64,000 nt of DNA, from positions 1 through 64,000 of the IMG/VR virus record IMGVR_UViG_3300017763_000002, one strand, 5' to 3'. The notes under the pieces are model-generated. The model did not search any database. It had not been told where the DNA came from and worked only from the letters and a program-made list of their open reading frames with translations. The stretch's first letter is position 1; the number at the start of each line of letters is the position of its first letter. A program made the translations under genes and the position numbers. Positions 8,769-38,106 of this stretch are shown here, piece by piece.

Positions 8769-9023
8769 ATGCCCGACGAACAAGACATGATATGGCTAAA
8801 AGGAATGCAATTAAAATTAAAAGGATGCGAGGCTAAAAACAGCGATATGAAATTTTTAATTAAATTAATGCAAGACGAATTAAACAAAACAAAACAATAC
8901 ATTCATTCAGAATGCCGCCGACCTGACTTTGAGTATTCAAAGCACGTTGACATGGCATTGTCGTGGACACCTAGAAAAAGAAAAAGAATAGTTACTCAAA
9001 TAAAAAATGAAATTAAAACGTAA
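8769..9023 (+). CDS. hypothetical protein, 84 aa (start refined from 8685)
   Basis: MPDEQDMIWLKG...; start placed by the GTGTA motif; overlaps the next gene. Confidence 0.55.
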   Translation: MPDEQDMIWLKGMQLKLKGCEAKNSDMKFLIKLMQDELNKTKQYIHSECRRPDFEYSKHVDMALSWTPRKRKRIVTQIKNEIKT

Positions 9024-9816
9024 AATATTGATTATGGGGTTGCCCGGTGCAGGTAAGACCTCTCTCGCTGAACTTTTAGTGCCTGCCTTAGGCGCTGTAT
9101 GGTTTAACGCTGACGCAATTCGTCAGGAAATACATAAAGATCTTGGATTTTCTGAGGAAGATAGAATAGAACACGCTCGTAGATTGGGAAAATTAAGTGA
9201 CTGGGCTGCCATGGGGGGTAACTTTGTGGTTTCAGATTTTTGCTGCCCAACAAAAGAAACTCGAGAAGTTTTTGAAGCTGATTTTACCATATGGGTGGAC
9301 AGGATTATGGAGGGCCGTTACGAAGATACAAACAAAATGTTTGAACGCCCTATGAATTACGACATTAGACTAACAGACGGCAGTCCAGAAGAATGGCTCG
9401 GAAAGGTTCTTAAAAAAATATACGAAACTGAAAAATGGGACAATCAAGCTCCGACAGCGCTTTTAATTGGAAGATACCAACCGTTTCACATTGGGCATAA
9501 AACGCTGGTTAATGAGGCTATTAAAAGAGTCGGTCAATGCTGTATTGCACTAAGAGATGTTGCAGGTACAGACGAAAGCAATCCTTATGATTTTGAAAAA
9601 GTTAAACTTGAAATCGAGAAAGCTTGCCTTGAGTTCGGAGATAAAATAAAAGTCGTTGAGCTTCCAAATATCACAGACGTATTTTATGGAAGGGGCGTAG
9701 GATATAATATCGAACAACTTGAACTTAGTAAAGAAATGCAGGATGTTTCAGCAACAAAGATTAGATCGGGACAAATTGGCCAAGACGGCAAACCTACTGG
9801 CAAGAGACCTGAGTAG
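9007..9816 (+). CDS. cysC: adenylylsulfate (APS) kinase fused to a HIGH-motif nucleotidyltransferase domain
   Basis: P-loop GLPGAGKT and DAIR...DLGFSEEDRIEHARR as in CysC; C-terminal IGRYQPFHIGH and VSATKIRS of the cytidylyltransferase/NMNAT-like fold. Confidence 0.85.
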   Translation: MKLKRKILIMGLPGAGKTSLAELLVPALGAVWFNADAIRQEIHKDLGFSEEDRIEHARRLGKLSDWAAMGGNFVVSDFCCPTKETREVFEADFTIWVDRIMEGRYEDTNKMFERPMNYDIRLTDGSPEEWLGKVLKKIYETEKWDNQAPTALLIGRYQPFHIGHKTLVNEAIKRVGQCCIALRDVAGTDESNPYDFEKVKLEIEKACLEFGDKIKVVELPNITDVFYGRGVGYNIEQLELSKEMQDVSATKIRSGQIGQDGKPTGKRPE

Positions 9817-9893
9817 TTTTGTCCCATTTTGGGCTGTAAGCCCTTTATTATTCATGTGTTTAATTGGCATAAAGATTGCAATACTATGTTTAT

Positions 9894-10265
9894 ATGAAAA
9901 ATTCACTAATAACTAACTTCTTGGGCGAGCCCAGCTTGCTCAGCGCGATGGATTCAATTATTGATTACAGTGTTGACTCCTATAAATATAGAACAACTCT
10001 AGAAAAAAAAGACAATGGGTATATCGTAACCGCTCAAGTTCCTGGAATGTCAAAAGAAGACATCTCTATTAAATTAGAAGATTCCGTGCTCAAAATAACT
10101 GGAGAAAAACAAGTTAATGAAAGCATGACTACATCTATTAATAAAGACTTCACTATAAGTAGTAGTATTAATACAAGCAAAATCGAAGCTAAGGTTGAAA
10201 ATGGTATACTTAACGTTTTTATTCCTCAAAAAGAAAATAAATCAAAAAAAATTCCAATTAATTGA
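9894..10265 (+). CDS. small heat shock protein (Hsp20/alpha-crystallin), start refined from 9876
   Basis: AQVPGMSKEDISIKLEDSVLKITGEK and IEAKVENGILNVFIP. Confidence 0.9.
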   Translation: MKNSLITNFLGEPSLLSAMDSIIDYSVDSYKYRTTLEKKDNGYIVTAQVPGMSKEDISIKLEDSVLKITGEKQVNESMTTSINKDFTISSSINTSKIEAKVENGILNVFIPQKENKSKKIPIN

Positions 10266-10398: not shown

Positions 10399-11007
10399 TT
10401 AATCGTTTTTGTACATTAACGATTGATATTCAACCATAATTTCTCGATAACCATGCTTTTTTAGATAAGGAATACTGTAAGTACTCTTAGAATCTCCCTC
10501 TGGAGTGTGAACGTCGTCGTGAAGAATAAGCGATTCTTTAGAAAGTAAATCATTTTCTAAAGCGTACTTAACATCTTTCAAGTGTTCAAGGCAAGCTTCT
10601 TCTCCACTTTCTAGATGATCCATATATAACAAGTCAATCTGATTTGGTTTTGGAAGAGATTCAAGAAAAACTTCTGCTGTAGATTCATACAGAATAACAT
10701 TAGGATTATTTTCGCACATTTTTCTAGCAACAAATATTGCTTCAGGCAAAGGATCCACAGAATATATTGTGGCTTGAGGTAAATTGTCCGCAAAAACCTT
10801 AGTAAAGCATCCCGCGCCCCAGTCCCAAACTGAGGGATCTTCATCGTAATGCTCGATGTCGGTGGTAAATATTTGCTGTCTAAATGATCTCGTAGTCCCA
10901 AGTTCAACAATATTTAATTCCCCACGCGTATCCAATATTTCTTTGCATAATTCGAATGTCTTCTTAAATGTATTTCGTCTTCTTCCCAGAAACTCTTCGT
11001 ATTTCAT
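10399..11007 (-). CDS. class I SAM-dependent methyltransferase (Methyltransf_24-like)
   Basis: IVELGTTR, YSVDP, IDLLYMDH and LILHDD motifs. Confidence 0.7.
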   Translation of the reverse strand: MKYEEFLGRRRNTFKKTFELCKEILDTRGELNIVELGTTRSFRQQIFTTDIEHYDEDPSVWDWGAGCFTKVFADNLPQATIYSVDPLPEAIFVARKMCENNPNVILYESTAEVFLESLPKPNQIDLLYMDHLESGEEACLEHLKDVKYALENDLLSKESLILHDDVHTPEGDSKSTYSIPYLKKHGYREIMVEYQSLMYKND

Positions 11008-11009
11008 AA

Positions 11010-11591
11010 TTATTTTTTGTAGATTTGACCTATTCCTGTGTTTCTTGGGGTTTCCCAGGTTTCGCCATAAGGGTCACAAGCTTTTTTAACACCTGGGCAC
11101 TTATGAAAACCATAATCATGAGTCAATATCTTGCCTCCAGGAACTACTTTATCATAAAAATGATTTAAGCAAGCTTTAGTGGGTATATAATGATCTAAGT
11201 CTAACCATAAAACAGCAATATTATTTACGTTAACTGATTGTATTGTATTTTCATCTATAAACATTGGGTATGTTCGCGGCACTTTAATATTGTTTTTTGT
11301 AAAATTATCTATCCATTTATCCAGCCCTCCAGCGTTGAACTCTCCTGCAAAGCATGGGTTTTCACACATATCTTCTTCTGCTGGTGGCGCTAAACCTTCA
11401 AACGAATCAATAGCGTGGTATTCTCGTTCTGGAGAAGTTAAAGTCATTGACATTACATCTCCTCCTAAATATGTGCCAGCAATAACAACATTACCTTGAG
11501 GAGCGAAAGCAACAGTATTAATTAGATGATTGATTTCATATACAGTAAGAGCAGTATATTCTTTAATTTGATTATATATATTGTTTGTCAT
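11010..11591 (-). CDS. TylF/MycF-like sugar O-methyltransferase (start refined from 11624)
   Basis: GNVVIAGTYLGG, IDSFEGL, LWLDLDHYIPTK and PGGKILTHDYG motifs; ATGA overlap with the upstream gene. Confidence 0.8.
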   Translation of the reverse strand: MTNNIYNQIKEYTALTVYEINHLINTVAFAPQGNVVIAGTYLGGDVMSMTLTSPEREYHAIDSFEGLAPPAEEDMCENPCFAGEFNAGGLDKWIDNFTKNNIKVPRTYPMFIDENTIQSVNVNNIAVLWLDLDHYIPTKACLNHFYDKVVPGGKILTHDYGFHKCPGVKKACDPYGETWETPRNTGIGQIYKK

Positions 11592-12397
11592 AATTTTTCT
11601 ATAAAAATTCCTATTGAAGTGCATGTAAACCCTTCGAATGATAACTTTAGGTGTGGGTCTTGAGTATAAGGGGGTACATCTATGTATCCATCATAAACTA
11701 AATCGCCTGAAGAAAAATCCATTTCACAAGCTTTATATCCCATTTGATTTGCAGTGTTTATTAATCTTTCAATATCCTGGCGGCGGTATATACAGGTTGA
11801 TGGATGTTCTAAAGTTTCTTGATTTGATGAAACGTTGTACTCTGTTGTATGTACAGCTATACCTCCTTTTTTTAAAGTTTTCATGCTATTAAGTATAAAA
11901 TCTATACCTTTCTGTAATGATCCTAAATGCTCTAGACTACATGCACTCCAATTAAAGTCAAAACTATCATTAAATTCATCTTGTATATTATTCATATCTA
12001 TACATCTATATTGTACATAATTATAAAAAGTGTCTCTATCGCAGAACTTTGGCAGCCATTTCTCAAAGGAGCTCAATGAATCAGAGTGTTGATCTGTGGC
12101 TATCCACCCACTTTTCTCGGCGGCTTCTTTATCCTGATCACTAGCAACTATATCCACTCCCTCAGTAGCTAATGCAGGAACTAAATATTCTTCTCCACAT
12201 CCAAACCCCAACCCTTTCTTACCAGGCTTCAGCATTCCCTTTTGTTCTAATACATTATATATCCATATCATCTCCCATACTTTACGATGATAATATACTT
12301 CTTGATCAAACTTATTTCTATTTATTCTTACAGAAGATACTGAATCTAAATGTGACTGCTTACATAAACTACCAATTAAATCAATATTTTTATTCAT
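11588..12397 (-). CDS. class I SAM-dependent methyltransferase
   Basis: KGLGFGCGEE, VASD, SFDFNWSACSLEHLG and LKKGGIAVHTTEY motifs. Confidence 0.8.
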   Translation of the reverse strand: MNKNIDLIGSLCKQSHLDSVSSVRINRNKFDQEVYYHRKVWEMIWIYNVLEQKGMLKPGKKGLGFGCGEEYLVPALATEGVDIVASDQDKEAAEKSGWIATDQHSDSLSSFEKWLPKFCDRDTFYNYVQYRCIDMNNIQDEFNDSFDFNWSACSLEHLGSLQKGIDFILNSMKTLKKGGIAVHTTEYNVSSNQETLEHPSTCIYRRQDIERLINTANQMGYKACEMDFSSGDLVYDGYIDVPPYTQDPHLKLSFEGFTCTSIGIFIEKL

Positions 12398-12570
12398 TGC
12401 TTATTATAATAACTTTCGGGGCTCTGTCGTAGACTGTAAAAACGTTGTTTTACATACTTCAAACCCCCACAACTTACTTATTTTATTCTGCCTTTTATGC
12501 ATATAGTATAATAACATTTTTTTAACAAAACAGCTAATATAATTTTTTTTATTTTGCTATAATGCCCTTC

Positions 12571-12644
12571 AGGCGATTCCGGCGTCAGCCGATACTATTA
12601 TAATTATTTATAAATTAATATTATTTATTGAATTGATATCGCCT
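12571..12644 (+). ncRNA. candidate small structured RNA
   Basis: TG-extended TATAAT at 12555-12563; 7-bp terminal stem AGGCGAT/ATCGCCT; internal CGGC-GTCA-GCCG hairpin; no ORF. Confidence 0.3.
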
Positions 12645-12665
12645 CAAACTGATAGGCATATAATT

Positions 12666-13394
12666 TTATAACATTCGCTTTATGACGTCCTCATTATCTA
12701 TTAAAATATAGTCTTGGGCTTTATTTCTTTCTGCAGTATTTGGTAGAAATTGTCCAAGAACTTCCAAAAACCTTCCGTTCCATTCTGCTCCCATGTTTTT
12801 CTTAGCCAAAAATTCCATATGATTTTTTACATCATGAATACTGTAACCCATGAAATGAATCAAGAAGTCCCCAGCTTTAAATTCAGATGGGTATTGATTG
12901 AACATTTTCCTAGGCCACGCCTCAAAGGGGTCTTCTTCTTTTTGAAGCAAGTTGATTAAAGGCGTTTGATCTCCGCCGTTCACCCTCCATTCTGGATCTA
13001 AGGTTTTAGGTAAAGAATCCCACCACTTCCAGAGAAGGTCGATTCCTCGGTATGAATTCTTCCAAATTAAAACTCCAGCATTTAGAGGCCAACTTCCTAC
13101 ATCATCAGCATAGTATACGTCTTTTGATAAGTCTTTTCTAATTATATCTTCAAGCAAAATATCATCATTTACAAAACAAGCATCTAAATCCATAAACACC
13201 ACGTAATCATATTTGTAAATATGTTTTAAAACAATGTATGGCTTTTGATTTGTTGGATTTACATCTGGAAAAGCAGATTCTTCTGCGATGTGATCGTATC
13301 CATGCTTCTCGCAATATAAAGAATTCATGTGCATGCACCCTATCATATTATTAGCGAAAGCTTTATCTCCTAATTGAACTACAGCAATTTTCAT
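12666..13394 (-). CDS. GT34/MNN10-like glycosyltransferase (start refined from 13487)
   Basis: YDYVVFMDLDA (DxD), LNAGVLIW, GDQT and FLIHFMG motifs. Confidence 0.8.
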   Translation of the reverse strand: MKIAVVQLGDKAFANNMIGCMHMNSLYCEKHGYDHIAEESAFPDVNPTNQKPYIVLKHIYKYDYVVFMDLDACFVNDDILLEDIIRKDLSKDVYYADDVGSWPLNAGVLIWKNSYRGIDLLWKWWDSLPKTLDPEWRVNGGDQTPLINLLQKEEDPFEAWPRKMFNQYPSEFKAGDFLIHFMGYSIHDVKNHMEFLAKKNMGAEWNGRFLEVLGQFLPNTAERNKAQDYILIDNEDVIKRML

Positions 13395-13404
13395 TACTAT
13401 AATA

Positions 13405-13428
13405 TACACATGCAAAATTAATAGTGTA
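13405..13428. promoter_or_regulatory. divergent pair of GTGTA motifs
   Basis: Minus strand GTGTA(13409-13405)-10nt-ATG 13394; plus strand GTGTA(13424-13428)-11nt-ATG 13440. Confidence 0.65.
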
Positions 13429-13439
13429 AAATATATTAT

Positions 13440-14495
13440 ATGCAAGTACCGTCTATTGATATACTTACTGTGGTTTGCGGTAAGCAAGCAGTCTTAAGTA
13501 TGTGGGCAAAATTTTTATTTACCGCAGGAAATTCTGTGCTTAATGTAAATCTTAAAATCGTAGACAATAGTAACAGCGAAATATTTAGAAAAACTTTAAT
13601 TTCCACCCTTAAGCTCAATAATGTATATAGCGCATTTAATGACGTGCAAATTATAGAATGTCACGCAGGGGTGCCTTCATTATTCGAAACGGCTAGAGAG
13701 AGCGCTAACGCTCAAAAGAAGCATCAATCTACTGCAGACGCATTTACTGCAGGGTTCAGACAATGCAATGCAGATTATATATTTACTGTAGACGATGATG
13801 TAGTCTGCCCATCTCACATTGTTAGCTCTTTTGCGGAAAAGATGTCAGCAGACCAATCAATAGGTTGCGTTACAGGGTATTATTTTACAAATCCGAATTG
13901 GGCGCATAATCCAGAAAAAGCCAACCAAAGAGAAACCTCTGTAGCTAAAGATATGGATAACCGCGCGCTCTCGGGAGTATATGAAATATGGGGAGAACCA
14001 AACTGTAAAATTAGGCATTGTGGTACTGGCTGCGCCCTCTGGAGGGCCAGCGATGTCAAGCAATGTCTACCTCTTAGAGTAGAGTCTCCTAGCGATTCAG
14101 ATTTATTTTTTTTAGGCCCAGATGTTTGTCTTTGTGATGATATAAATAAATTAGGTAAATCAATTATTTTAGATACAAAAATGATATGTCAACATTTAGA
14201 TCATAACGGCAATGAGGTTGGATTAGGTGTAAAAAACTTTTTTGAAGAATATCAAAAGCAAACACAACGTATGAGTCAAGCAGAAATAGCATATTATCTA
14301 CAAGTTAAATTAAATAATTTAAATTCTTTAATGCTAGAATCTATAACGGAATTAATTGAGGGCAAACCGACATCAATAGCACTACAGCATAAAATTAAGA
14401 CCGACCTAGAAAATCTTTTTGAGAAAAGTCAGGATCCAAATAGGCAAAAAATAATCAAAAATATTATCAAATACATATTAATCACCGATAATTAA
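13440..14495 (+). CDS. GT-A fold (GT2-like) glycosyltransferase
   Basis: IVDNS, YIFTVDDDVV, GTGCALWR and DVCLC..INKLGKSIILDTKMICQHL motifs. Confidence 0.75.
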   Translation: MQVPSIDILTVVCGKQAVLSMWAKFLFTAGNSVLNVNLKIVDNSNSEIFRKTLISTLKLNNVYSAFNDVQIIECHAGVPSLFETARESANAQKKHQSTADAFTAGFRQCNADYIFTVDDDVVCPSHIVSSFAEKMSADQSIGCVTGYYFTNPNWAHNPEKANQRETSVAKDMDNRALSGVYEIWGEPNCKIRHCGTGCALWRASDVKQCLPLRVESPSDSDLFFLGPDVCLCDDINKLGKSIILDTKMICQHLDHNGNEVGLGVKNFFEEYQKQTQRMSQAEIAYYLQVKLNNLNSLMLESITELIEGKPTSIALQHKIKTDLENLFEKSQDPNRQKIIKNIIKYILITDN

Positions 14496-14496
14496 A

Positions 14497-15309
14497 ATGA
14501 GACTTCCAGACTTTATTATTCCAGGGTTTCAAAAATGTGGAACTACAGCTCTAAGGCAAAATTTAAATCAACATCCCGAAATATATATGCCTAAGTGCGA
14601 TGACATACTCTGCAATACCGACCAAGAAATGAATTTTTTTGTAAAACACGCAAACTTTCACAAAATGCCGGCGGACGAAGCCTTGCTTTGGTATAAATCT
14701 CGATTCAAAACCGACGCTAAGTTTTGCGGAGAAAAATCTCCTAATTATACTCTAATTCCTGAATTTTCTGCGGCAAGAATGCACGAAATAGTACCTAATA
14801 TAAAGTTAATATTTAGTTTCAGAAACCCAATAGATAGATGTTATTCTGCATACAATCACTACTCCCAAGCTTTTAACGATAAACAAGACTGGGTTGATAA
14901 CGTGGATTGGAGTCCAGATAAAAGTTTTTTATGGAATTTAGAAAATAAAAAAGGCATAAAAGAAAATACAAATTACGCTGAAACTCTAAAAACCTATGCA
15001 AAGTTTTTTAGTTCGGATAAAACGCTGCTTATTATCCAAGAAAGATTGCAAAAACCAGCGTATGAAATAAAGTCGGACTATAAAAACAATGAGATAATAA
15101 ATGAAGGTCAAGAAGAGTACGATAGGATATTTAATTTTCTTGGAGCGTCAAGTTTTAAAATTAAAAATAGAATCGTCCACGCCCGCTCAAAAAAGCAACT
15201 ATCTTCAATAGAGCGTGAGGCCGCTTACCGAATTTTATCGAAAGAGTTTGAGGCATTTTTTGAGATATACGGCCAGACTGTTCCGGAATGGAAGCAAGAC
15301 TTAAATTAA
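14497..15309 (+). CDS. PAPS-dependent sulfotransferase (heparan sulfate 3-O-sulfotransferase-like)
   Basis: LPDFIIPGFQKCGTTAL (5'-PSB loop), GEKSPNY and FRNPIDRCYSAYNH (3'-PB motif). Confidence 0.9.
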   Translation: MRLPDFIIPGFQKCGTTALRQNLNQHPEIYMPKCDDILCNTDQEMNFFVKHANFHKMPADEALLWYKSRFKTDAKFCGEKSPNYTLIPEFSAARMHEIVPNIKLIFSFRNPIDRCYSAYNHYSQAFNDKQDWVDNVDWSPDKSFLWNLENKKGIKENTNYAETLKTYAKFFSSDKTLLIIQERLQKPAYEIKSDYKNNEIINEGQEEYDRIFNFLGASSFKIKNRIVHARSKKQLSSIEREAAYRILSKEFEAFFEIYGQTVPEWKQDLN

Positions 15310-16254
15310 TTTATAGATCTCTGAATTTTTAATTTGTTTAAATAAATTACCCCTGTGTACGGCGAGCCTCCTTCTTTCGATCAAGTATCTGTGCGCTCTA
15401 GCAATTATATAATCTCTCTTGATGAGTTTATTGGCCTCTTGCATGCTTGAATAATATAATGGATAGTTATGCCCTAAATATTCGCACGCCGACTCGCTTT
15501 TATTAATTAATATAGGAGTACAGCAATCTATACAATCTAGTATAGTATTATTAGCAACACAATCAAATAAACATAAAAAGAATATATTATTCTCGTATAA
15601 TTTATAATAATTTTCATTACTTAATTTATTTATTTTATTTATATTATCTAGCGTGCCTTTATTAAATTGATTATACATTGATTCTGTTACCTCGTTCCAT
15701 GGTATAATATTTTTTGTATAGTTTGTTGGAGTCTCTAGCTCTAGTAGGCCGGCGGGATTTCGGAGGTGCATGCCTGGAGAGTATATATTTCTATTTTTAG
15801 ATTTATTAAAAGATTTTAAATCAAAAACTAATGGTAAATATTTTATTGGATGGTATATAGTTTCACAGGGCACATTAATACCTTTCGATTCAAAAAACGT
15901 TTTAAATTTATTAGCTTCATATTGAGACATAAAATATAAACCCAAACATTGGTTTTGTATAATTTCTAGAACGCAATCAGGATAAGGTTGTATTTTATTT
16001 ATGTATAAATGAGCATCAAATGGATCGTGAATAATTGCAATAAATGGTTCTACAGGAATGCTTTTGAGGGCTTCGTCGATGTGTTTAAGATTATTCTGAG
16101 TAAACCAACCAAAATGCGACTCAAAGAAAGTTAAAAGATTGACGTTGCCCCTGTAAAGCTTACTCTGCGCCTCAAGATATTTACAGGCCAAGTCCCAGCC
16201 TTCGTGAATCATTTCATGGTTTGGGGATATAATGTGTTTAAATTTCACACCCAA
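15301..16254 (-). CDS. putative GT-B-like glycosyltransferase
   Basis: C-terminal FLCLFDCVANNTILDCIDCCTPILIN...EYLGHNYPLYY resembles GT-B C-lobes seen in large-virus glyco clusters; cluster context. Confidence 0.5.
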   Translation of the reverse strand: MGVKFKHIISPNHEMIHEGWDLACKYLEAQSKLYRGNVNLLTFFESHFGWFTQNNLKHIDEALKSIPVEPFIAIIHDPFDAHLYINKIQPYPDCVLEIIQNQCLGLYFMSQYEANKFKTFFESKGINVPCETIYHPIKYLPLVFDLKSFNKSKNRNIYSPGMHLRNPAGLLELETPTNYTKNIIPWNEVTESMYNQFNKGTLDNINKINKLSNENYYKLYENNIFFLCLFDCVANNTILDCIDCCTPILINKSESACEYLGHNYPLYYSSMQEANKLIKRDYIIARAHRYLIERRRLAVHRGNLFKQIKNSEIYKLI

Positions 16255-17063
16255 GTCCTTGATGATTCATGAGTAAAATAAGAGTCTGGCAGTAAAGATT
16301 CTACGAGATATTGCTTAGGAATGTGTTGCCATGGCCCGTCAGTTGTATTGCTTTTTTCGAACAAACTTGATACGTTAAATTTATTAAACAAAACCAACTC
16401 CCCCTCGTTTTTTCCTGGCAATGATGTTGGGTTAGTATAAAAATAAGGTAACACGCACAATGAATGATTACTGCTCGCCTGAATTTGACTAGCAACTGCA
16501 GCGCTAATTAGTTGAGGTCCAGTGCTCCAAAATACTTTAGACTGTTTTTGCATATCGCGCTTACATTTTAATTCAAGAGCTCTTTGCTGCATCATGTATG
16601 CCGCAAGAATCCAAAATCTTGAGTTAGGCTCTGAGGCCATAATGGCATTGTATATGGAGTTTTGTAGATTATAAGCATTTGGGTACTCTTCGAATAAGAG
16701 CACCTGTCGATTATGCGAGCAATTTAACAGAAACTGACAATCATTATGCTCAATTTGGTCTATCATTTCGTCCATAGGCTTCAGCGACAACATGTCTAGA
16801 TCTAAGTAAACTCCGCCGTATTTGTGCATATAAAACACTCTGGACGCGTCTGCACGCTGTATTGGCCACTCGTACGACTCGTAAGTATCTAAAAACCAAG
16901 GGTAATAGTCTGCGATTAAATTAAAGTTATCTTCGTCGGTCCAGTACTTATATTCCCATTCTGGATGGTTTTTTAATAGCACATTTCTGATGCTACTCTC
17001 TTTGGCTGGCAAGTCTTTTGCCTTGCTTTTCCAGCTTTGATGGATTATTTTAGGGATTTTCAT
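16245..17063 (-). CDS. GT32 (Och1/Sur1-like) DxD glycosyltransferase
   Basis: IPKIIHQSWKS, HPEWEYKYWTDED and RADASRVFYMHKYGGVYLDLD motifs. Confidence 0.9.
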   Translation of the reverse strand: MKIPKIIHQSWKSKAKDLPAKESSIRNVLLKNHPEWEYKYWTDEDNFNLIADYYPWFLDTYESYEWPIQRADASRVFYMHKYGGVYLDLDMLSLKPMDEMIDQIEHNDCQFLLNCSHNRQVLLFEEYPNAYNLQNSIYNAIMASEPNSRFWILAAYMMQQRALELKCKRDMQKQSKVFWSTGPQLISAAVASQIQASSNHSLCVLPYFYTNPTSLPGKNEGELVLFNKFNVSSLFEKSNTTDGPWQHIPKQYLVESLLPDSYFTHESSRTWV

Positions 17064-17069
17064 AGCTCC

Positions 17070-17090
17070 TGTGTAAATCTATATTACACA
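17070..17090. promoter_or_regulatory. overlapping face-to-face GTGTA motifs (palindrome TGTGTAA-N7-TTACACA)
   Basis: Sits in the 31-bp gap between divergent starts 17063(-) and 17095(+). Confidence 0.6.
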
Positions 17091-17094
17091 AGAC

Positions 17095-18150
17095 ATGAGA
17101 ATTTTTATTACTTCCGATTTATCAAAATCACCCTGGAAAGATTCTTCAGTTCAAGCCTCGATTTTTCTATATGAATCTATACAATCTACTGGAGCTGAGG
17201 TGTTTATGCTAAACGTTGCTAGTTCAGAGGCTTTTACTGAAAGAAAAAATAAATTTTATAATATGAGTCAGATTGGTGACCCAAATTTTCCCTCGATAGA
17301 CGTTTTAATTATATGCGGCGCAAAAGTTTCTTTAACCCAACAAGAGTCTATCAAAAGCAGGTTTGGCGCTAAAATTATACTTTATCAACATTACTTTGTT
17401 TCTGCAATACATCAGGAAAATTTTGCCCACAACAAGCCGCTCCCTTGCTCGGAGCCTTTGGTTGACGAAATTTGGGTCCCCGAGCATCATAGCAAAAGCA
17501 TGCAGTATGTTAGTTTATTCTATAACCCGAAAGCATCAATTAAGTCGGTTCCTTATTTGTGGGATTCAAGTTTTATAAATTCTGAAAACAAAAGGGGTAG
17601 AATAAATTTTGAAAAAGAAGAAAAAAAGTCTATTGTGATATTTGAGGATAATAAATATTCTTTCAAAACTTGCTTGATGCCGATTATGATCTGCGAAAAA
17701 GCTAATCAATTAAATCCAAAAGCCATTGACGCAGTGAGCGCAATGAATACGTCTAATGCAAAAAAGAATCTATCTTTCATGAACTTTTCTAGCGATTTAA
17801 CTTTAAATAAACAAAACAAATTACATCTGAGCGGCGCATGGAACTTTAGTAGTGCTATATCTAAAATTGGTAAATATATATTATCATATCAAGAGAATAA
17901 TCATTTAAATTATTTATTTTTGGAAGCTTTGTATTTAGGGCTACCTCTTATACATAATTCCGAATACATTAAGGAGTATGGTTATTACTTTAATAGTATG
18001 GATTTAAATTGGGCTGCGAATCAAGTTTTAAATGCTCTCTCTAATCACGAAGAAAATTTAGAAGTTTATAGAGAACAGAATAAATTTCTAATCAAAAGCT
18101 ATCACCCTAAAAATCATAAAAATAAAGCCTTTTTTAATTCTTGCTTTTAA
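17095..18150 (+). CDS. DUF2827 family protein (putative glycosyltransferase-like)
   Basis: VPYLWDSSFI, KTCLMPIMICE and QENNHLNYLFLEALYLGLPLIHNSEYIKEYGYYF motifs. Confidence 0.75.
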   Translation: MRIFITSDLSKSPWKDSSVQASIFLYESIQSTGAEVFMLNVASSEAFTERKNKFYNMSQIGDPNFPSIDVLIICGAKVSLTQQESIKSRFGAKIILYQHYFVSAIHQENFAHNKPLPCSEPLVDEIWVPEHHSKSMQYVSLFYNPKASIKSVPYLWDSSFINSENKRGRINFEKEEKKSIVIFEDNKYSFKTCLMPIMICEKANQLNPKAIDAVSAMNTSNAKKNLSFMNFSSDLTLNKQNKLHLSGAWNFSSAISKIGKYILSYQENNHLNYLFLEALYLGLPLIHNSEYIKEYGYYFNSMDLNWAANQVLNALSNHEENLEVYREQNKFLIKSYHPKNHKNKAFFNSCF

Positions 18151-18189: not shown

Positions 18190-18726
18190 ATGAAAATTTT
18201 AGGCAAAAACGGTTATGTTAGAGATGTTACGGACGCTGATGTTTTAGAGCTTTCGGCTCATCCACGAGACGTAGACCAAAGGCATTCTCAGTATTTAGGC
18301 TGGGAAAATTACCACGAGCACATAATTAATACTTTTCATTCTTCTAAGCGGAGTTTAGCCTTTTGTTTCAGCGATGGAACTTTAGTCGGATGTACAGGAG
18401 TGCACGACTCCCCACACGCCCGAGTCGGAGGCGTCTGGGCATTAGGAACTAAAAACTCTTTAGATATTCTAGACTTCAAAGGCAGCTTAAAAAAAAGTTA
18501 TGGCAATTTAAAGTCTATTTTAGGTGTTTATGAATTTATGAAAATATCCAGGGAGCATTTCGATTGGCTTTTCGGAGAAGATTTTGATGTTTTGTTAAAC
18601 ATTGTTGAAAAAAATAACAAATTAGGACAGAGATGGTTGCGTTTTTTGGGAGCAGAAATCACGCCTAAAGACGACCGCTTTTGTCAAGTAACATTTTATA
18701 AAAATGGGCGGCGGAGTACATATTGA
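18190..18726 (+). CDS. GNAT-fold protein similar to T7 gp13/DUF2833
   Basis: LLNIVEKNNKLGQRWLRFLGAEI matches the N.V...N....RWL..LG.F pattern; GTGTA at 18164. Confidence 0.55.
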   Translation: MKILGKNGYVRDVTDADVLELSAHPRDVDQRHSQYLGWENYHEHIINTFHSSKRSLAFCFSDGTLVGCTGVHDSPHARVGGVWALGTKNSLDILDFKGSLKKSYGNLKSILGVYEFMKISREHFDWLFGEDFDVLLNIVEKNNKLGQRWLRFLGAEITPKDDRFCQVTFYKNGRRSTY

Positions 18727-21700
18727 TTTTAATCTAGATTTCTTATCTGCAGATCCTACATCCAACTCTGCCAAAAGAACATTATTCGGACACTCCAGGG
18801 CTGCCATGCCAGGAGCAATGCCGACATGGTACGGCCGTTTCAGGCAGTATGCGGTTTACGAAGTTGGGCATTTAGTTTTGCACGCGGATGACGCTGATGA
18901 TTTCTTGGCAAGAAATGAGAGGTCAGCGCCTTCTTTATCTAATTTATATGTATGCGTAAATACTAATAGAGCCGGAGATTTTCCGCCTCCTTCCTCAACC
19001 TCATGGAGATCATTGGCGGATTTGTCTAATGATTATGATACCGGAGCAAGATCAGTTCCTAGGGCTACTTTTTTAACTTCAGGAAGAATGTCTGATAATG
19101 AAATATGTTTAAATTTATTTGAATTTATTGATTTAAATTTTGTAATTTGTAATTCTACTTTCACCCCACTAAATAGCGGTTTAGACCCTATTGCTATTAA
19201 GCCTAGGGTTGGAGCCTCATTTGGAGGAGGGGTTACAAGGACTAGAAGAGAAGTGGATTTAAATTCATCGCAAGGCGGAAACTTAGAAAGGTTTACCGTG
19301 GATTATCCAGAGTATGCTATTTCGGGCACAGGGCAGATTCCCTTGCCTAGTAGAAAATTTGGTTTTGCGGCAACTTCTTTAAATGCACAAATGGGTTCAG
19401 AAATTGAAGCTCTTAATCCAACGAATGACCCGCTAGATCCAGATTTGACTGCAAATTCTTTTGACTCTTCTGTGGTTTATGAAGTTGGAAGCGTAGTGAA
19501 TTATTTTCCAATAGCTGATAATCAAAGCTTAGAGTCTGAAGTTTTTGATACGACTAACCACCCAAAGCTATCTGTGTGTATTAAAAATCTAGAATCTCCA
19601 GCAAGAGATCAAAACGGAACTTATGATACAAGCAAGCTCCCCTGGAATCAAAATTCGACTTACTGGAGGTCATATACATCTGCGGCGAACCGACCAAATT
19701 CATCATTAAGTTCTGTTTATGAATATTTAGTTAATAAAAAAAATAGATTTCCTGCATTTACAGTTAATCCTGACCCGGTAAAAAATCTATCTAACCAAAC
19801 AGTTATCAGGAATAAATCTAGAATTCGTATGAATGATTTTGGTGGCACCTCAAATATTTATGGGCACTTTTTTGTGCATTGGGCTACCGCATTACAACCT
19901 TATAGCAGGAGTAAATGCAGAACCTGGTACTCTGGGGCGTCATCGCAATCTGGCCCACATCAAGATGGGCAATATGATATTTTTATATATACTAAAAATT
20001 TGAAAAAAGACCACGGCGGCCAACCCAGGTTAGCTGTAACTTTCGGAAAAACTACTGCTATTAAATTTTTATCTGTTAGCGGAGTCTCTACATTTTCTAC
20101 AGGCACTATAAGTTCAAATACAATAAATAAATATTTAAAAGATGATAATTTTAACTCGTCAATGATTCAAGAGGTTAGTTCTGAGGCAGATATAATGCAT
20201 TATCAATATAGTAATCTCGTTCCCTCTTACTACATGGGAAGAGGTTACGTTCATGCAAGAAGAAGGGGCGGAGTTCATCCTGGCTCTAGCAAGGGCGATC
20301 GAAATTTAGGTAAATTTATATTGTTTATCGAAGATTTATTGTCTCGCCAAAGAATTGAAATGGTAACTCCTCAAATATTTTCTAATGGGAATCCCAGGCT
20401 TGGTCTTCATGGCCACTCAATTCCAACTCAAGACTGGGGAGAAACTGGGGCCACAAGAAATTATCAATATACAAAAGAAATTGTAGATGGCGGGGGTTTA
20501 ACAGATTTATTATCCACAAAAACAACTGCCACGACAGCGGCACAACCAATGCATTACTTAATAGTAGGCAACGCTTTAAGCGCAACAGACCAAGTAGCGA
20601 ATCAAGGAATAAGCTTTCAAAATCGTTTCGTAGATAGGGCTTTCAGGCCAATTATGCTGAGGACTGATGCGTTAAGCGAAGAAAGATTTTTTCATATACT
20701 TGGCTTGATGCAAACTGGATTCGTCGGGGTTGACGCCGAACTTTTTAAAAATATTACGGACCAAAATATCGACAACTTATCTGGTATAGAGAACAAAATA
20801 TGGATGGATCTTGGGGAGACGTTCCATGGCTCCCAAGGGAACCCTTTATTTAAATCAATCGCCTCTAAAATAGGCTCTTTTAAAGAAAACACACTTACGA
20901 ATCTAAACGATTTAGCTAGCTGGAGTTCATCTTCACAGTACTCTCCGCAGCAAATCACTAAAATTACCCATTCAGATTATTGGACTGCAGGAGGTGACCA
21001 GGGGAGTGCTAATTTTGTCGGACCTTGGTATTATGATGTGCAATATAATTCTGGGAGCGTTGTTTATTTGTGGCAAGACGGACAAAAAACTTATTATACC
21101 GCAGCAGCGAGTTCTAAGTCTGTTTCTCCAAAAGAATTTTTTACTTTTTACAGGGCGTCAGTGGCAAACTCAAATAAAACTCCTATCTACAATTCCAGTA
21201 TCTGGAAAAGAGTGTCAATACCTAAGGGTAATATCGGTTTCCTTAAAGGTTTTGTTTCGACTATAAACCCTTATACTTCATTGCAAGTTTTAGCTAATTC
21301 TAACCTATGGCCTCCAAGCGGAAGGCGCGCATCTAAAATTGGATTTGGCTGGAAGAGGACTTTATCTGAAGAGGGAATATTAAATCAAATCACAGAAAGC
21401 AATCAAGAGTCATATTTATCAAGCTGGACTGAAGGCGCAGAATACCAAGCGGGAGATATTATTACCGTGCAATCTGGTCCAATCGTCGCCCTTGCTCCAG
21501 ACGGAGAATACTATACTTACGAACAGTGGGTGTCTCGTTTTAATTTAAGCTCCCAAGAAGAAGAGGAAGTTTCTTTGCTGTTTTCAGAAGCAGAGGCAGT
21601 TAACCCGCTTTATGCTTTTAAGTGCTTAAAAAATACGTCTGAGGCGGATGTCAACGACCCTAAATCTTATGTAGGATTAATTCCTGGTTTTATTCCAAAT

Positions 21701-24700
21701 GAGACTTCGTCTGAAGTTTATTACTTACTGTCAAACCTAGACTCCGAGCAAGATTCAAACGATGTTATTTCAGAAAACATTGTATCTCAAACAATGTGGA
21801 AAGATATTTCAGCAGCTGAATGGAATAACGGTTCAATAACAACCAGTAAACTGGCGCACTATGGCCTGCTCCCTACGGGTCAATTTAATAAAAGAGACGT
21901 TTTCGGCGCAGGAACATATGCTTATGACCTTTCTTTTGAACCTTATTACAAAGTTGGTGATGCAGTTGTAATGAGGCAATCTGGCGTTGATGTATATAGG
22001 CTTAAAATCAAAGCATTTCACTTGATTGATTTTTCTTTAATTCCTGCCAGCTATACTGATGGAGGTAGTCTAGAATCTGCTAGCAGGATAAAACCAGATT
22101 ATTATTATTCTTCAAACATAAATTTAACAGGATCTTCGGTGCAAAACTATAGTTCTACCACCAGCTTCCACGGGCTAATTAGATCTCAGTGGTGGCAGCC
22201 TGTCGCGAAAAGAACAGGGGCTTTAGAAAGGGGATACCCCGATATATACGGAAACACAGGCTCTTACTTCGTGGTTCCAAAAAGCTTTGATTTCCTTCAT
22301 CTAGAAGATGGAATTGCCGAAGTGGCTCAACAAGCCACAGTCGACTCTACTATTAAAGTATACTTTGATGAGGTTAAAACTTTCGACTTGAGGGGTACGC
22401 AATACTACTGGACAAATGAAGTTAAAAATATTAGCTCAAATATGATTAATGCTTTGCCAAGTTATGGAAACGAAACGGAATTAGAGCCAAATTTAGTCGC
22501 AGAGCTTGAGCACCCTTATATTGATTTTGATGTTTTTGGGGCAAGTTGGGATGACGGCGGAACGACATCTCCGAATTTACTACAAACATCCACAACTGGG
22601 CATGAAGCTGTAGAGTATTTTAAAAGCTGGCTATATTCAAGTTTTGACGTTCAGCTAGCCAGAGACTTTGGAGAGCCTAAAGGTAGCAGCGTGAACCTTG
22701 ACGCTATATTGTCAAGTAAGTTTGAATTTGTAAAATACTACAGTTTTTATAATCCCACAGTTACTTTAAAGTATCAAATATGCGACGCATCTAATAATCC
22801 TATTGGTAGCGAAATTGATTATGTTGAAGGGAGTGAAATAGAAATCGAAAAGGGGCAGAGGATAAAATTAATCCCAAAATTAATTAAAGATGATAATAGT
22901 GAAATTAGTACTTTTTCATTGATGTGCAATTCTTTTGCAAAAAATAATACTATTGGACTTTTTCTAAGAACCCCTTTGGATAGCAATTATAAAGAAGTAG
23001 ATTTTTCTTATACTCATGTATCATCTTCTGTATCCGAGCCGCCTATTGATTCTGATGGAATAAGGGTTCCATATTATACGAACAAAGAAATTACTAGTGG
23101 GCAATTGGCTTTTCCCGCGCAAACCGGAGGCGCATATAGCGTTACTGCAGACCAAGCTAAAACCTATGCGAATGGAAATATTGTATCTTATGGGGCAAAA
23201 ACTTATGAATTTTATGTAGATGATGCTGATTGGCAATTTGACGCAGACATTGAAAATAATCCTGAAATAGCTCCAGGCAGATGGCACAGAAGATCCTGGA
23301 AAAATCCAGTGACATTGACCTACGGGGGAATTGCTCCTGAAAATACTCACTATAGAAGTTCTGGAGAATTTTTCCGCACGACAGAACAAGGCGGGGTGCG
23401 GGCTTCGGCGGAAACAATAACCCCCACATTTTCCAGTTCAGCTTTCACCCTAACTACCAACTTGCAAAATCTACTATTCGATTCTGCTATTGCATTTGGA
23501 CCTTATGGTCAAAATCTTTTACTATCTACCATAGATCAAGCTTATGAGGAAGTGGCCATAAAAGAAACTCTATTGAGTAGGTTTTATAAGTCTCAAACAT
23601 TGCACGATCAATACGGAGAAACTGGATCTGCAGAAGAAAAACTATTATCATCCGCACCAAAATGGAGGAACGTTTCAGGGCCAGAAGGCTCAATCACTGA
23701 GAACGAGATTCTTGGAATTGAGTGGTCTGCAAATAATGTTTACGCTCAGGGAGAAATTGTTGAATTTGGAAATAAATTATATATTTCTACCAAAATTAAT
23801 TCGTCTGTAGACCCTGCTTCTGAGCCGTCAGAGTGGAAAATTGTTCAACCTTGGCACCAAGACAACCATTACATTCCCGGGGATTTTGTTTATATATTTG
23901 AAGATGAGCTTGTTTTATCTTCTGATTCTAACGGAAACCCTCTTCCAACCTTAAGAGAAAACATTCAATTAAAAGGCCCTAGCTCAGGAGGAAATAATTC
24001 CTTTATTTATCCTTCTTGGTCAAAACACAAATACTATCATATAGGAGAAAAAGTTATTAAAAATTCAGCAATATACATATGTATCGCTGCAGGTATTGCG
24101 TCAACAGAATTAGAATTTAATCAAACTTTTCAATTAACTGCGGAAGCGGTTCCTGCACATCCTAATTATGGAGGTAAATATGCTTTCTTCGTTTGTGAAA
24201 AAAATATTTCTCCTGGGAGCGGAGGGCATGACCCGAGAAGATTGAACGTTCTAACTTCCATGCACGGAGATGATGACATTTTAATTAGGGCTAGCGATAA
24301 TTTATCTAAAGCTTTTAATCAAAATGACGATATATATTTAGATTTTACATATCAGAACGGGGATGCATTTAAGGTTAGCACAAAAAATATTAGCCTGTCT
24401 TTGTTCGGTTATAATTCTGCATCAAATATAGACGAAAGAGATTTTTTAACTCAAATTAATGCAAAACCAGAAATTGCAGAAGCGCATGCATCAACCTTAT
24501 CTGCGTGGTCTACTGGGTCTGAGGGGGAGGGTTTTATTTCAACTGGAACATTGAATATAAAAATAAAAGTTACTAATCCAAATCCATCAAGCGTAATTGA
24601 TAGAACTTTTACTCCCGCTACGCCACCTTCAGATTCTACCTGTCAAACATTTACTTCATATTCTAACTTGTTATGTAGTAATAAATTTTTCATTAATAAT

Positions 24701-27700
24701 GGAAAATTATATGCTTCTGGTTTAGATAGTGGTGAGTTAGGTTTTATTGGATTAATGGATAATTCAGAATTTCAAAATACGGTGTTAGGTAATAGTACCG
24801 AAGGTTCTCAGCACAGATCGTATAATAAATTTTGGGCGCTGGAAGGAATAGGAACTGATACTGAAAATCATAGGGTAAAGATTTTTGAAAATGGTAGTGG
24901 CGGCATTAGTAGTTCAGACCAAAATGAAACCATATCTAATGATCAATCAACTTTTGTAAATTCTGAAGGAGGAAACACAGTATTTATTTGCGGAGGAAAA
25001 CTTTATGGAATGGGTCACAATCAGGGTTATTCTTTAGGGTTGTGCGCTACTTCATCAAGCACATTTGGATTAGGTAACCGATCTCAAGGCTACAGAAAAG
25101 ACGGTAATGATGATCTTGATAAACAGAGAAAGAGCGAAGCTGTGCAAGACTTTTTTGAAGCATCCTTGCATTTCGATTCAGATTATTATATTAATCTACA
25201 AGTCAATCCTGGCAGCACAATCTATAGCCTTGGAGACAGTCAGCAACAATTTAGTACAGATATGAGCACAGATCTTGTTGCGTGGAACCATTTCACTAAA
25301 AAAGGTTTTTATCAATCAATTAATGACGAATGGTCTTTAATAGGATATACTAAAAAAGATGCGAACTTCTGGGGTAGTACGTCAAATCAAATATCCCAAC
25401 TTACAAGCGATTGGTATTTTGTTGAACCTTATAATTCTAGCTCTTGGATATCTCATCCAGGATCAATGGAAGCGACAGCTTTATTTACTCCTAATTATAT
25501 GCCTTCTGATTTTTGGCAGACAGGAGGAATACACGCATACAATTTAGACCAAAAGACACCTGCAGGTAGTTGGGGCGTAATGAATCTAGCAAACCTTGAC
25601 GCTTACTTTGAGTCGAGTATTTTTGAAAGGATGGATAAGCTTATTGAAGACGAAGATTATTTTAATGCCTGGAAGAACAATATGGCTCAATATAAATATG
25701 TTGAAAATTCAAGCGTTTATCATGGAACAGTTGATACATCTTCTGGATCTCAACCTAGGCTGGGCTGGAACGGTATACTCATAAATGAAAATTCTTTAAA
25801 ACGTTTTTATGACATGGGCGACTTCGTGACTTCATCAACATGGATGAGCCAAATGAGGATCGGAAGAACAGTTGCTATTTCTGGTGAAATTGATGGATCT
25901 GATTCGGGCTTTAAGCTGGCTACGTCTCATGAAAATGGAGTTGCTAGCCTAAATCCAGTATCAAGCCCAGATTATAGTTACTATAATAATTCCCAAACTT
26001 ATGGTTATGACGGGAGCATGGGAAAATGGGCTAAGGTATTCACTCATAATAAATCACTTTATATTAACGGCAAACCCTTTTGGGATCCAGTGCTGGGAGA
26101 ATCAGAGCACATCGTGATTGATACTATAACTGGAGAATATAATGCAGGAAATTCTGGTTCCGATAACCGAGCGACTCCCCTAGGTATTTATAAATTAAAT
26201 TCTGAAAAAAATATTTCGTTCGGGAATTACCCTAGAAATACCAGGCTAGAATCAGATTTACAAATAATTATTCCAAACAATTTAGGAATTAGTAATTTAC
26301 CTGGAGGAAAAAGAAATATTGATGGTCTTGGTAACGCAAGCAAGGAAATTATTCCTGCGAGAACATATGTTCCGTACGCGACTAAATTAACGGACGAAGA
26401 TGTAACTTGGGCTGCGACAAACAAGTATTCTACATTTTACATTAACCCCCAAGGGCAAGTAAAAGCTTTAGGTTCAGTCTGCGCTTGTCCTTTTTATAAA
26501 ATACAAGGATTAAGCGTTCCGCAATCTTTTGAGTTAACTCCTGGCGGAGACTTCGGCGGTTTGATGGGCGTAGAGGGTAACTATTCGTCTCCAGCTGTAT
26601 CTATAAATTCATTTGATGCTTTTGGCTCACTTACAATTACTGCAGATGACGCAAGCCCTGTGTTTAAAAATGATAATTGGGCTTTAATTCTTTCTGCGGC
26701 GGGAACTACCTCTAGTAGTAATTTACAAACTCATGCAGCTGATGTATTTAGTGGAGATGACATTTATTTCGGATCAGATTCTAGCGAATATATATTTAGA
26801 GATCAAATATCCCAGGAAATTATTATTGAATCTCAAATTACTGCGTCTTTATATGGTCAAAATTTGCTAAAAGTTATGTATGATGATAGCAGCTATAAAG
26901 TTGCAGCCAATAGTTGGATGATAAGATTTACAGAGAAAGGGGCGGGATTAAATGGCAGTGATATAGTTTCAGACTTGAGATGGTACGCAACTAGTTACAA
27001 TCATTCTATTTTAGTTAGAGCTGTTTATTTATTAGTATTAAGGAGAGAGGCTGATTCTCTTGGACTCAGTCATTTTTCTGGACAAAACCACTATGGAGTT
27101 AATATGACTCTTTATCAGCTGATTGGAGCATTAATGTTAAGCGAAGAATTTATAAGTAATGATGCTGCTAGTTTAACTAAACGATATGTAATAGATGCTA
27201 ACCCAGAATCTCCGCAGATTTCAAACGATCCCAGGGATTGTTTTCCGGCAATGAAAAAAATGATGAAGATATGGAATCATTATGGAAATACTTCGTTTCA
27301 ATATTGGGATGGAGATTCAAACATGAGCACTTCTCACATGCTGCGGATTTCTAGTGAATACATAGGAGCTATCGTAATTAATAACTGCGAACGAGAAGAA
27401 GTCAACGGTATATATCGCCCGTCAAAAGGATGGGATGATAATGATTTTAATAGTACTGCAGATAGATCTTGGTACGAGCACGCTCATAATCAAGGAGGTA
27501 GGGATGATGATAAAGGTATATACGTAAGCGATAAAAACACTCAATACGGAAAAATCTTAATTTATTGGGATGCTAATCTTGATATTTGGAGAATGCAGTA
27601 CTCTGATTTTTGGCTGCAGGATACTACAGGAGATGGACTCAGGGCTCAAAGATTAATTGGAATGCAAAAACATTATTACAACGCCAATGGAGATTTGGTT

Positions 27701-38098: not shown

Positions 38099-38106
38099 TA
38101 TATTTT

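Follow-up and report, generated by a model that had tools for sequence, protein, structure and literature searches.

The kinase–nucleotidyltransferase locus

The window is the 64-kb stretch of DNA analyzed here, and it comprises the first 64 kb of a viral record of 204,906 bp. Genes for a terminase, a DNA polymerase, a ClpB-like ATPase and PhoH in the window indicate that the record belongs to a large tailed phage. The subject of this report is a gene whose product, designated P0001, joins a kinase to a very small nucleotidyltransferase (mini-NT), and which lies upstream of a set of glycan-modification genes. The relevant features are as follows:

9007..9816, + strand: kinase and mini-NT fusion (P0001), an ORF of 269 aa with an ATG start and no internal stop
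9007..9426, + strand: N-domain (residues 1–140), a lid-less, APS-kinase-like P-loop kinase (Pfam APS_kinase)
9037–9060, + strand: P-loop GLPGAGKT (residues 11–18)
Within the N-domain, + strand: APS-site block NADAIR...GFSEEDRIEHARR
9448..9780, + strand: C-domain (residues 148–258), a ~115-aa HIGH nucleotidyltransferase and, by inference, a candidate sulfate adenylyltransferase
9469–9498, + strand: GRYQPFHIGH (residues 155–164)
9685–9705, + strand: YGRGVGY, in the C-domain
9748–9765, + strand: SATKIR, the second superfamily motif (residues 248–253)
10399..18150: glycan-modification island around the sulfotransferase, from Pfam scans
10399–12397, − strand: three methyltransferases of the island
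12666–13487, − strand: GT34-like gene of the island
13440–14495: GT2 gene of the island
14497–15309, + strand: sulfotransferase, the presumed PAPS consumer (Sulfotransfer_3, 5e-11; Sulfotransfer_1, 8e-10)
15301–16254, − strand: unknown gene of the island
16245–17063, − strand: DXD glycosyltransferase of the island
17095–18150: DUF2827 gene of the island

The original prediction, made from the sequence alone, described a CysC-like kinase at the N-terminus and a GRYQPFHIGH domain at the C-terminus, and this is borne out by the ORF, the Pfam matches and the motifs. Residues 7–88 match Pfam APS_kinase (E 4.9e-12; 46.6 bits, cut-off 21.1), and residues 153–178 match CTP_transf_like (E 6.6e-6; 26.8 bits, cut-off 21). 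NCBIfam models assign the N-terminal half to adenylyl-sulfate kinases and the C-terminal half to NMN adenylyltransferases (NMNATs), with all scores far under the curated cut-offs.

The fusion is real and not an artefact. P0001 matches PHROG 10255 (“kinase”) with an E value of 4.4e-49, residues 6–254 aligning to profile positions 3–226 of 230; a word search recovered 3469 relatives; and the AlphaFold model of the full protein has a mean pLDDT of 92.8. Since the PHROG spans the whole of P0001, the fusion constitutes an established phage family, albeit one without a defined function. The family is nearly all viral and very abundant in marine metagenomes. Its database names disagree with one another (adenylylsulfate kinase, PPAT, shikimate kinase, NR kinase and Kti12), and no description of the fusion, or of a new type of ATP sulfurylase, was found in the literature searched.

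The sulfotransferase had been placed 4.7 kb from the fusion, and it does lie 4681 bp downstream, where it is the genome’s only Sulfotransfer_3 match. Both PAPS-binding motifs (5′-PSB and 3′-PB) can be read from its translation as QKCGTT and RNPIDRCYS. By direct BLAST against related loci, the genes of the surrounding island are shared only with the nearest relative of this phage (L004), a result that first looked like a lack of co-occurrence until the neighboring genes were clustered and scanned. A gene for a 5895-aa RCC1/CBM protein comes after the island. Neither a NADAR gene nor an inorganic pyrophosphatase gene was found in the genome to which the window belongs.

The N-terminal domain is a lid-less member of the APS-kinase clade

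Conservation was assessed in an alignment of 51 diverse, full-length homologues that are 33–49% identical to P0001. In the N-domain, K17 and R39 are invariant, while G11, G16, T18, D36, F48, R53, Q56 and P81 are nearly so. These conserved positions make up the P-loop and the APS-binding site known from solved APS kinases. The Asp and Arg of the APS-site motif DGDxxR are present, as are the Phe and Arg of GFSxxDR, and His or Gln stands in place of the Asn.

With a profile of the N-domain family, E values for solved APS kinases range from 1.7e-19 to 1e-12, and the families that rank next reach only about 1e-5. Likewise, Foldseek searches with the full model return APS kinase domains and PAPSS1 at the top of the list, the latter by way of its kinase domain. 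The domain is nonetheless reduced relative to canonical CysC, from which it differs by the deletion of ~28 residues of the lid. Its Pfam match is limited to model positions 5–91 of 152, and it scores 46 bits with TIGR00455 against a cut-off of 138.7. The N-domain can thus be placed specifically in the APS-kinase clade, with its APS-site residues kept; the corresponding reaction (APS + ATP to PAPS + ADP) is inferred.

The C-terminal domain is a minimal HIGH nucleotidyltransferase

CTP_transf_like matches the C-domain in all 50 family members searched. Residues G155, R156, Q158, H161, H164, G228, R229, G232 and R253 are invariant, corresponding to the motifs G-R-x-Q-P-x-H-x-G-H and Y-G-R-x-V-G and to the Arg of I-S-A-T-x-x-R. 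The best matches to a C-domain profile are archaeal NMNAT (1f9a, 1.2e-11) and NadM (2e-10), and no ATP sulfurylase (Sat) appears among its matches up to an E value of 10. Only 5 of 50 C-domains match the canonical sulfurylase model PF01747, all below threshold (best, 2.3e-4). When the C-domain profile was compared by hhalign with Sat profiles (Neobacillus Sat; a 14-sequence alignment of low diversity, with 87–94% identity to its first sequence), the HxxH region alone was aligned, at 1.4% probability, with Q158 paired to the Sat Gln across a 3-residue gap. The QxRN loop of Sat is not found in the C-domain, and G-R-x-Q-P precedes its HxGH instead.

The predicted structure of the C-domain (pLDDT 93.8) has only three clear β-strands. 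In VIA-align comparisons, PPAT scores highest (Z 10.9), followed by NadM (10.7) and NMNAT (10.5); HldC- and TagD-type enzymes are also listed, and Thermus ATP sulfurylase (1v47) has a Z of 8.9 with 113 of 116 residues aligned. Since this is the generic fold of HIGH nucleotidyltransferases, the fold does not decide specificity. It is nevertheless clear that the C-domain is not a member of the ATP-sulfurylase (PF01747) family and that archaeal or NadM-type NMNATs and PPAT are its closest relatives. The caution in the original prediction that GR(F/Y)QPFH is typical of NMNATs was therefore justified, as the nearest relatives in both sequence and structure include these enzymes.

This kinship is the starting point for the first rival explanation, in which the kinase half alone serves sulfation by converting host APS to PAPS, while the C-domain, acting separately, adenylylates NMN/NaMN to salvage or repair NAD in the infected cell. 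Archaeal and NadM-type NMNATs are indeed the closest sequence and structure relatives. However, alignments of the C-domain with 1f9a and 1ej2 break at profile positions 80–81, after β3, and pick up again about 33 NMNAT residues further on; the C-domain is short of about 26 residues here. In archaeal NMNATs, the helix after β3 bears the Trp that stacks against nicotinamide, and the missing stretch includes this helix. Relative to NMNAT, the C-domain has also gained the Y-G-R-x-V-G motif after β4 and a near-invariant Arg after β2. Every curated NMNAT cut-off is missed by far (for example, 25.9 bits against 181 with TIGR01527), and the C-domain profile separates bimodally, with 144–171 bits on family members and 37–54 bits on NMNAT-type genes. 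These features speak against an NMNAT assignment, as does the gene context described below.

The C-domain may also bear a limited resemblance to Sat at the substrate site. In published structures of Sat, the QxRN loop binds sulfate through its Gln and Arg, together with a backbone NH two residues past the GRD motif (PMC3779200; PMC11697783). In the C-domain model, Y-G-R-(D/G)-V-G follows β4 and is invariant at G, R and G; the Asp of this GRD-like motif is not conserved and is Gly in P0001. By analogy, the Arg and Gln before HxGH, together with G-R-x-x-G after β4, form a possible parallel to the sulfate site of Sat, suggestive only and without a residue-level superposition, and their equivalence is undemonstrated.

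Association with sulfotransferases among phages

Eighty viral loci with 92–37% identity to P0001 were compared. When genes near the fusion were clustered, the commonest neighbor was a ~210-aa Sulfotransfer_2 protein, followed by GDP-mannose-type epimerases/dehydratases, inorganic pyrophosphatase, the C-terminal domain of mannose-6-P isomerase, UDP-galactopyranose mutase and GT2. When whole records were scanned, 25 of the 45 related viral records proved to encode Sulfotransfer_2 (9 of the 11 that are ≥90% complete), a single record having as many as 11 such genes; the family was absent from all 14 control bacteria. Sulfotransfer_3 was present in 6 further records, at 1–5 kb from the fusion, so that sulfotransferases of two families occur in 31 of the 45 records as well as in the window’s own genome.

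Custom HMMs built from the phage proteins gave a similar picture, with a sulfotransferase of one of two families within 10 kb of the fusion (≤10 kb) at 37 of 83 loci. The gap between the two genes is only 0–38 bp at L007, L008, L012, L050, L052–56 and L072, which represent several sequence-distinct groups. Phage sulfotransferases are otherwise rare. Among 50,697 reference phage records, there were just two matches, Stenotrophomonas phage DLP_6 and megaphage LR756500.1, each of which belongs to the 17 reference records that have a fusion or APS-kinase match. DLP_6 encodes the full fusion, and the megaphage encodes a canonical CysC. The original prediction would have been refuted had the fusion failed to co-occur with phage sulfotransferases; the two do co-occur.

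A canonical ATP sulfurylase was found in none of 50 phage records, in which the only PF01747 matches were sub-threshold and inside the C-domain itself. Of these 50 records, 16 encode an inorganic pyrophosphatase, and all 16 belong to the close marine lineage.

The association is not universal. No Pfam-detectable sulfotransferase was found with the Casjensviridae copies or in viral lineages L046–49, L057, L073–74 and L080–83. In Casjensviridae, a NADAR gene lies directly upstream of the fusion, a link for which a role in PAPS supply offers no explanation. One protein of this family (P0436) possibly has sulfotransferase-like motifs, by reading of its sequence only. Unknown ORFs of 208–216 aa upstream of the fusion at L074 and L075 were considered and are not sulfotransferase-like. 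At L080–82, a TET-associated glycosyltransferase (TAGT) protein follows the fusion, which hints at uses beyond surface glycans. The lid-less kinase also occurs in Ralstonia jumbo phages (phiRSL1 ORF238 and RsoM2USA_247/248), where no mini-NT was detectable. The megaphage has the gene order NADAR, unknown ORF and canonical CysC, and the intervening ORF (144 aa) is unrelated to the C-domain.

Some of these observations favor the NAD-salvage rival. NADAR is associated with NAD/ADP-ribose metabolism, and the megaphage, which has a sulfotransferase and a canonical CysC with no ATP sulfurylase, indicates that a phage can rely on host APS. Against this rival, NAD genes are not recurrent among the clustered neighbors of the fusion.

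A second set of observations could be taken to support a different product. In this rival, the protein makes another 3′-phosphorylated adenylyl compound, following the logic of CoA synthase (a PPAT-like domain plus a 3′-kinase), or else a nucleotide sugar for neighboring glycosyltransferases, following the logic of HldE. PPAT is the top VIA-align match, the HldC- and TagD-type enzymes are on the same list, the fusion is often found among genes for GT2, GDP-mannose dehydratase and UDP-Galp mutase, and the TAGT glycosyltransferase follows it at L080–82. However, the kinase retains the phosphosulfate and adenine site of APS kinases and not a sugar or pantetheine site. Moreover, the link with sulfotransferases is rare and specific, whereas glycosyltransferases are common in phages, and in the bacterial contexts described below the genes are those for CysH, sulfite reductase and CysQ rather than genes of CoA or LPS synthesis. 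We therefore consider this explanation very unlikely.

Split modules and bacterial genomes

Searches with the C-domain alone revealed standalone mini-NT proteins of 114–133 aa. In every context examined, the mini-NT gene came directly after an APS-kinase-type gene and overlapped its end. Such split, adjacent and overlapping pairs were seen at L169, L170, L173–L179, L182–184 and L202–L204. For instance, on two short contigs (L169 and L170), the kinase and mini-NT are in different frames with overlapping stop and start codons. At L173–175, the pair follows CbiX, TP_methylase, sulfite reductase, CysH and DUF2061; at L176–179, the order is CysQ-like PAP phosphatase, APS kinase and mini-NT; and at L182–184, the pair is clustered with two sulfotransferases, a halogenase, a carbamoyltransferase and 2OG oxygenases.

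A search of 401 Alphaproteobacteria with the C-domain profile yielded 10 strong matches, in the 144–171-bit range given above, while the NMNAT-type matches (37–54 bits) were weak and partial; nothing was found in five unrelated control genomes. Local HMMs confirmed the bacterial copies of the module, three of them split and seven fused. The partner kinases in bacteria have the same lid deletion as the phage domain, indicating that the kinase and mini-NT are one conserved module that is fused in phages and some bacteria.

The most informative bacteria belong to an alphaproteobacterial order (here termed the G369 order) that is represented by 11 genomes of 0.6–1.2 Mb, all of them small drafts without a reported completeness. 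Ten of the 11 carry the mini-NT. In the annotated regions of G369 and G237, it ends an operon of the order (CbiX)-TP_methylase-sulfite reductase-CysH-DUF2061-kinase-mini-NT, with siroheme genes at the start. In 9 of the 11 genomes, CysH and the mini-NT share a contig, with CysH ~1.3 kb upstream. All 11 have exactly one strong PAPS_reduct match, which is CysH, and hence no CysD. Sat occurs in one genome only (G237), leaving 10 of 11 with neither Sat nor CysD. These sulfate-assimilation operons would thus lack any known ATP sulfurylase, a gap that the mini-NT is proposed to fill.

Five further bacteria have the module without Sat and CysD, and four of these carry sulfotransferases; in one (G201), the sulfotransferase gene starts 12 bp past the stop of the fusion. 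On the other hand, the module is not always the sole possible route, since Sat is encoded alongside it in G237, as are CysH + CysD pairs in G290, G448 and G294.

The bacterial data bear on two rivals. With respect to the NAD-salvage rival, the C-domain is always fused with or beside an APS kinase, and it occurs in operons for sulfate assimilation and with CysQ. The loss of the NMN-binding helix, the clean separation of profile scores and the constant presence of an APS kinase in sulfate-assimilation or PAPS operons together disfavor the alternatives in the original prediction of a coupled PAPS/NAD or sugar-nucleotide enzyme, and we regard NAD salvage as an unlikely role.

In the remaining rival, the C-domain is a partner in the PAPS pathway that is not a sulfurylase (for instance, an APS/PAPS-binding or -channeling subunit, or a protein that regulates the kinase) and does not transfer an adenylyl group to sulfate. 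It is known from fungal ATP sulfurylase that a domain of this pathway can turn purely regulatory, which provides a precedent, and the C-domain is very small, with its three clear strands and no QxRN loop. Against this, phage and bacterial members alike retain, without exception, the catalytic histidines of HxGH, the arginine of ISxTxxR and additional arginines, and the sulfate-assimilation operon would still be without an ATP sulfurylase in 10 of 11 genomes. This rival, too, seems improbable to us.

Proposed function and significance

Taken together, the module most likely makes PAPS (sulfate + 2 ATP to PAPS), a reading to which we assign a probability of roughly 0.65. What has been shown is the arrangement of the domains, the conservation of catalytic and APS-site residues and the associations between genes; the two activities, the sequence of the steps and the identity of the acceptor are inferred. 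The idea in the original prediction of a one-gene PAPS supply for the sulfotransferase is supported in this sense, through comparative genomics and not through homology to ATP sulfurylase. That is, the reading rests on co-occurrence with PAPS consumers and on the absence of any other ATP sulfurylase. Against it stand the lack of biochemical evidence, the greater proximity of the C-domain to NMNAT and PPAT than to ATP sulfurylase in sequence and fold, and the missing QxRN loop.

According to this model, the C-terminal mini-NT would adenylylate sulfate (ATP + sulfate to APS + PPi), and the lid-less APS kinase would phosphorylate the 3′-OH of APS to yield PAPS, thereby pulling the unfavorable first step forward. 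The formation of APS is very unfavorable and must be pulled forward, and fusion or translational coupling of the two domains makes sense for this reason. The phage sulfotransferase or sulfotransferases would then use PAPS to sulfate glycans of the neighboring glycosyltransferase/methyltransferase island, with the 5895-aa RCC1/CBM protein as one candidate acceptor.

If the mini-domain activates sulfate, it would be the smallest known ATP sulfurylase and a case in which one HIGH-family enzyme has replaced another within the superfamily. A broader proposal, which we consider slightly more likely than not, is that this ~115-aa, NMNAT-derived domain represents a third, unrecognised class of ATP sulfurylase, the split form assimilating sulfate in abundant, small-genome marine Alphaproteobacteria and the fused form supplying PAPS to the expanded sulfotransferase sets of a large, abundant group of marine phages. 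Marine lineages scored as lacking Sat or CysDN might then still assimilate sulfate or make PAPS, and genome-based calls of “no sulfate activation” would miss the mini-NT. It would also follow that an abundant group of marine phages invests in its own supply of sulfate donor, with up to 11 sulfotransferases per genome. The phage sulfotransferases point to sulfated glycans, on the virion or the surface of the host, as an aspect of infection that has yet to be explored. A 269-aa, single-chain generator of PAPS, if confirmed, could be useful for sulfation in biotechnology.

Comparison with known systems

Canonical CysC (PF01583/TIGR00455) shares with the phage kinase the P-loop, D-x-x-R, the F-S-x-x-(D/G)-R-x-x-(N/Q/H)-x-R-R block and the (I/C)-(S/C)-P loop. 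The phage kinase differs in lacking the ~28 lid residues and in being fused, or translationally coupled, to a mini-NT.

Archaeal and NadM-type NMNATs resemble the C-domain in the GRFQPFHxGH and ISxTxxR motifs, and are its best sequence matches and among its best fold matches. In contrast to these enzymes, the C-domain has lost the stacking helix, has the new Y-G-R-x-V-G motif and the Arg after β2, and scores far below the family cut-offs. It is also never found in a NAD context, except beside NADAR in Casjensviridae.

Sat (PF01747) belongs to the same HIGH superfamily, and the G-R-x-x-G loop after β4 of the C-domain appears to sit topologically where the GRD-H-A loop of Sat does, the backbone of which binds sulfate (PMC3779200). 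However, the C-domain is without the QxRN loop, the GxxKxxD mobile loop and the N-terminal PUA-like domain of Sat, and profile comparison of the two is not significant. Known ATP sulfurylases are also much larger than ~115 aa.

The closest parallel in overall design is with animal PAPSS1/2, in which a single polypeptide likewise has an N-terminal APS kinase and a C-terminal HIGH adenylyltransferase, and for which the chemistry is the same as that proposed here. PAPSS is ~620 aa long, with a canonical ATP-sulfurylase domain of ~400 aa that includes QxRNPxHxGH, the GRD loop and a PUA-like domain. In the phage protein, by comparison, the second domain is ~115 aa, NMNAT-like and without a PF01747 match, and the kinase has no lid. 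What appears to be new, with its function inferred, is a bifunctional PAPS synthase that would use a minimal, NMNAT-like sulfurylase half instead of Sat or CysDN.

NADAR genes beside APS kinases

An association between NADAR and APS kinase genes recurs in Casjensviridae phages and in the megaphage LR756500.1, and is without explanation. In the Casjensviridae, the start of the gene for the fusion of a kinase and a mini-nucleotidyltransferase (mini-NT) is overlapped by a NADAR gene. In the megaphage, NADAR is followed by an unknown 144-aa ORF and then by a canonical CysC; upstream there is also a gene resembling PNK phosphatase. Two genes upstream of the fusion in the Casjensviridae locus L001 is Bhz60_00032, which contains LPRSRSAW and HRPAREVAHS, sequences similar to the 5′-PSB and 3′-PB motifs of sulfotransferases. 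Statistical support for this likeness rests solely on a weak match to Sulfotransfer_3 (E 0.0077).

NADAR/APS kinase neighbourhoods and the neighbouring gene in compared loci
L001 5565-6741, L002 5565-6741 and L086 3080-4507: NADAR and APS kinase
L001 4978-5556: Bhz60_00032, 192 aa

Sulfotransferases in related phages and outside the window

Sulfotransfer_2 genes number 9–11 per record in the phage relatives G011, G013, G015 and G022 (the viral records of loci L021, L023, L025 and L038), and some of them are arranged in tandem arrays. The PAPS-binding motifs PKxGGxS and RNPxDRxVS are retained in their products. In the window's own phage genome, a second, weaker Sulfotransfer_1-like frame is located outside the window (G000:C1:174933-175640), with a match (E 2.3e-5) that falls short of the cut-off.

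Phage neighbours of the fusion and possible targets

Immediately downstream of the fusion in the window is an HSP20 gene, and further genes of the window encode PhoH, a subtilase, the terminase large subunit, a ClpB-like ATPase and a DNA polymerase. PHROG gives no match for many of the window's large ORFs (46425-47981, 48653-49792, 58621-61948). Immediately past the glycan island is a giant ORF with RCC1-repeat and CBM5/12 matches, and large proteins also follow the fusion in loci L062 and L078. It is conceivable that these large proteins are the glycosylated or sulfated targets.

Other phage loci place different genes beside the fusion. In one lineage (L074, L073, L071 and L057), to which a 349-kb record belongs, the fusion closes a run whose other genes encode a TctC-family solute-binding protein and two unknown proteins, each of ~210 aa. 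A sulfotransferase was not detected in this lineage.

Genes of the window, and genes near the fusion in other loci
Window 9876-10265, 37376-39246, 44523-46391, 51332-56385: HSP20, PhoH, subtilase, terminase large subunit, ClpB-like ATPase, DNA polymerase
Window 18704-36391, + strand: giant ORF, 5895 aa
L062 10888-12615: RCC1/Ig protein, after the fusion
L078 10873-17445: 2190-aa ORF, after the fusion
L080 10786-12324 (also L081, L082): protein of 512 aa carrying a TET-associated glycosyltransferase domain, after the fusion
L077 2212-3306: SAM synthetase, after the fusion
L083 7192-9904: two radical-SAM/SPASM proteins, before the fusion
L074 7772-10004 (also L073, L071, L057): run ending in the fusion
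L046 11291-12835: halogenase, neighbour of the fusion

Apparent tailoring cluster, domain variants and bacterial operon

A gene cluster in loci L182-L184 (115-8345) combines a carbamoyltransferase and two sulfotransferases with several 2OG-Fe(II) oxygenases, a cupin/JmjC protein and a Trp-halogenase-like enzyme, the last of which is followed by a split mini-kinase and mini-NT. The cluster appears to tailor small molecules or peptides and to supply its own PAPS. An N-terminal DUF4118 membrane domain precedes the kinase in some metagenome relatives (proteins P0165, P0233 and P0236), whether or not the mini-NT is also present. In the bacterial sulfate-assimilation operon, CysH and the kinase are always separated by a small DUF2061 protein of 88–97 aa (L173 5210-5476; L202 3487-3780; L203 9854-10126).
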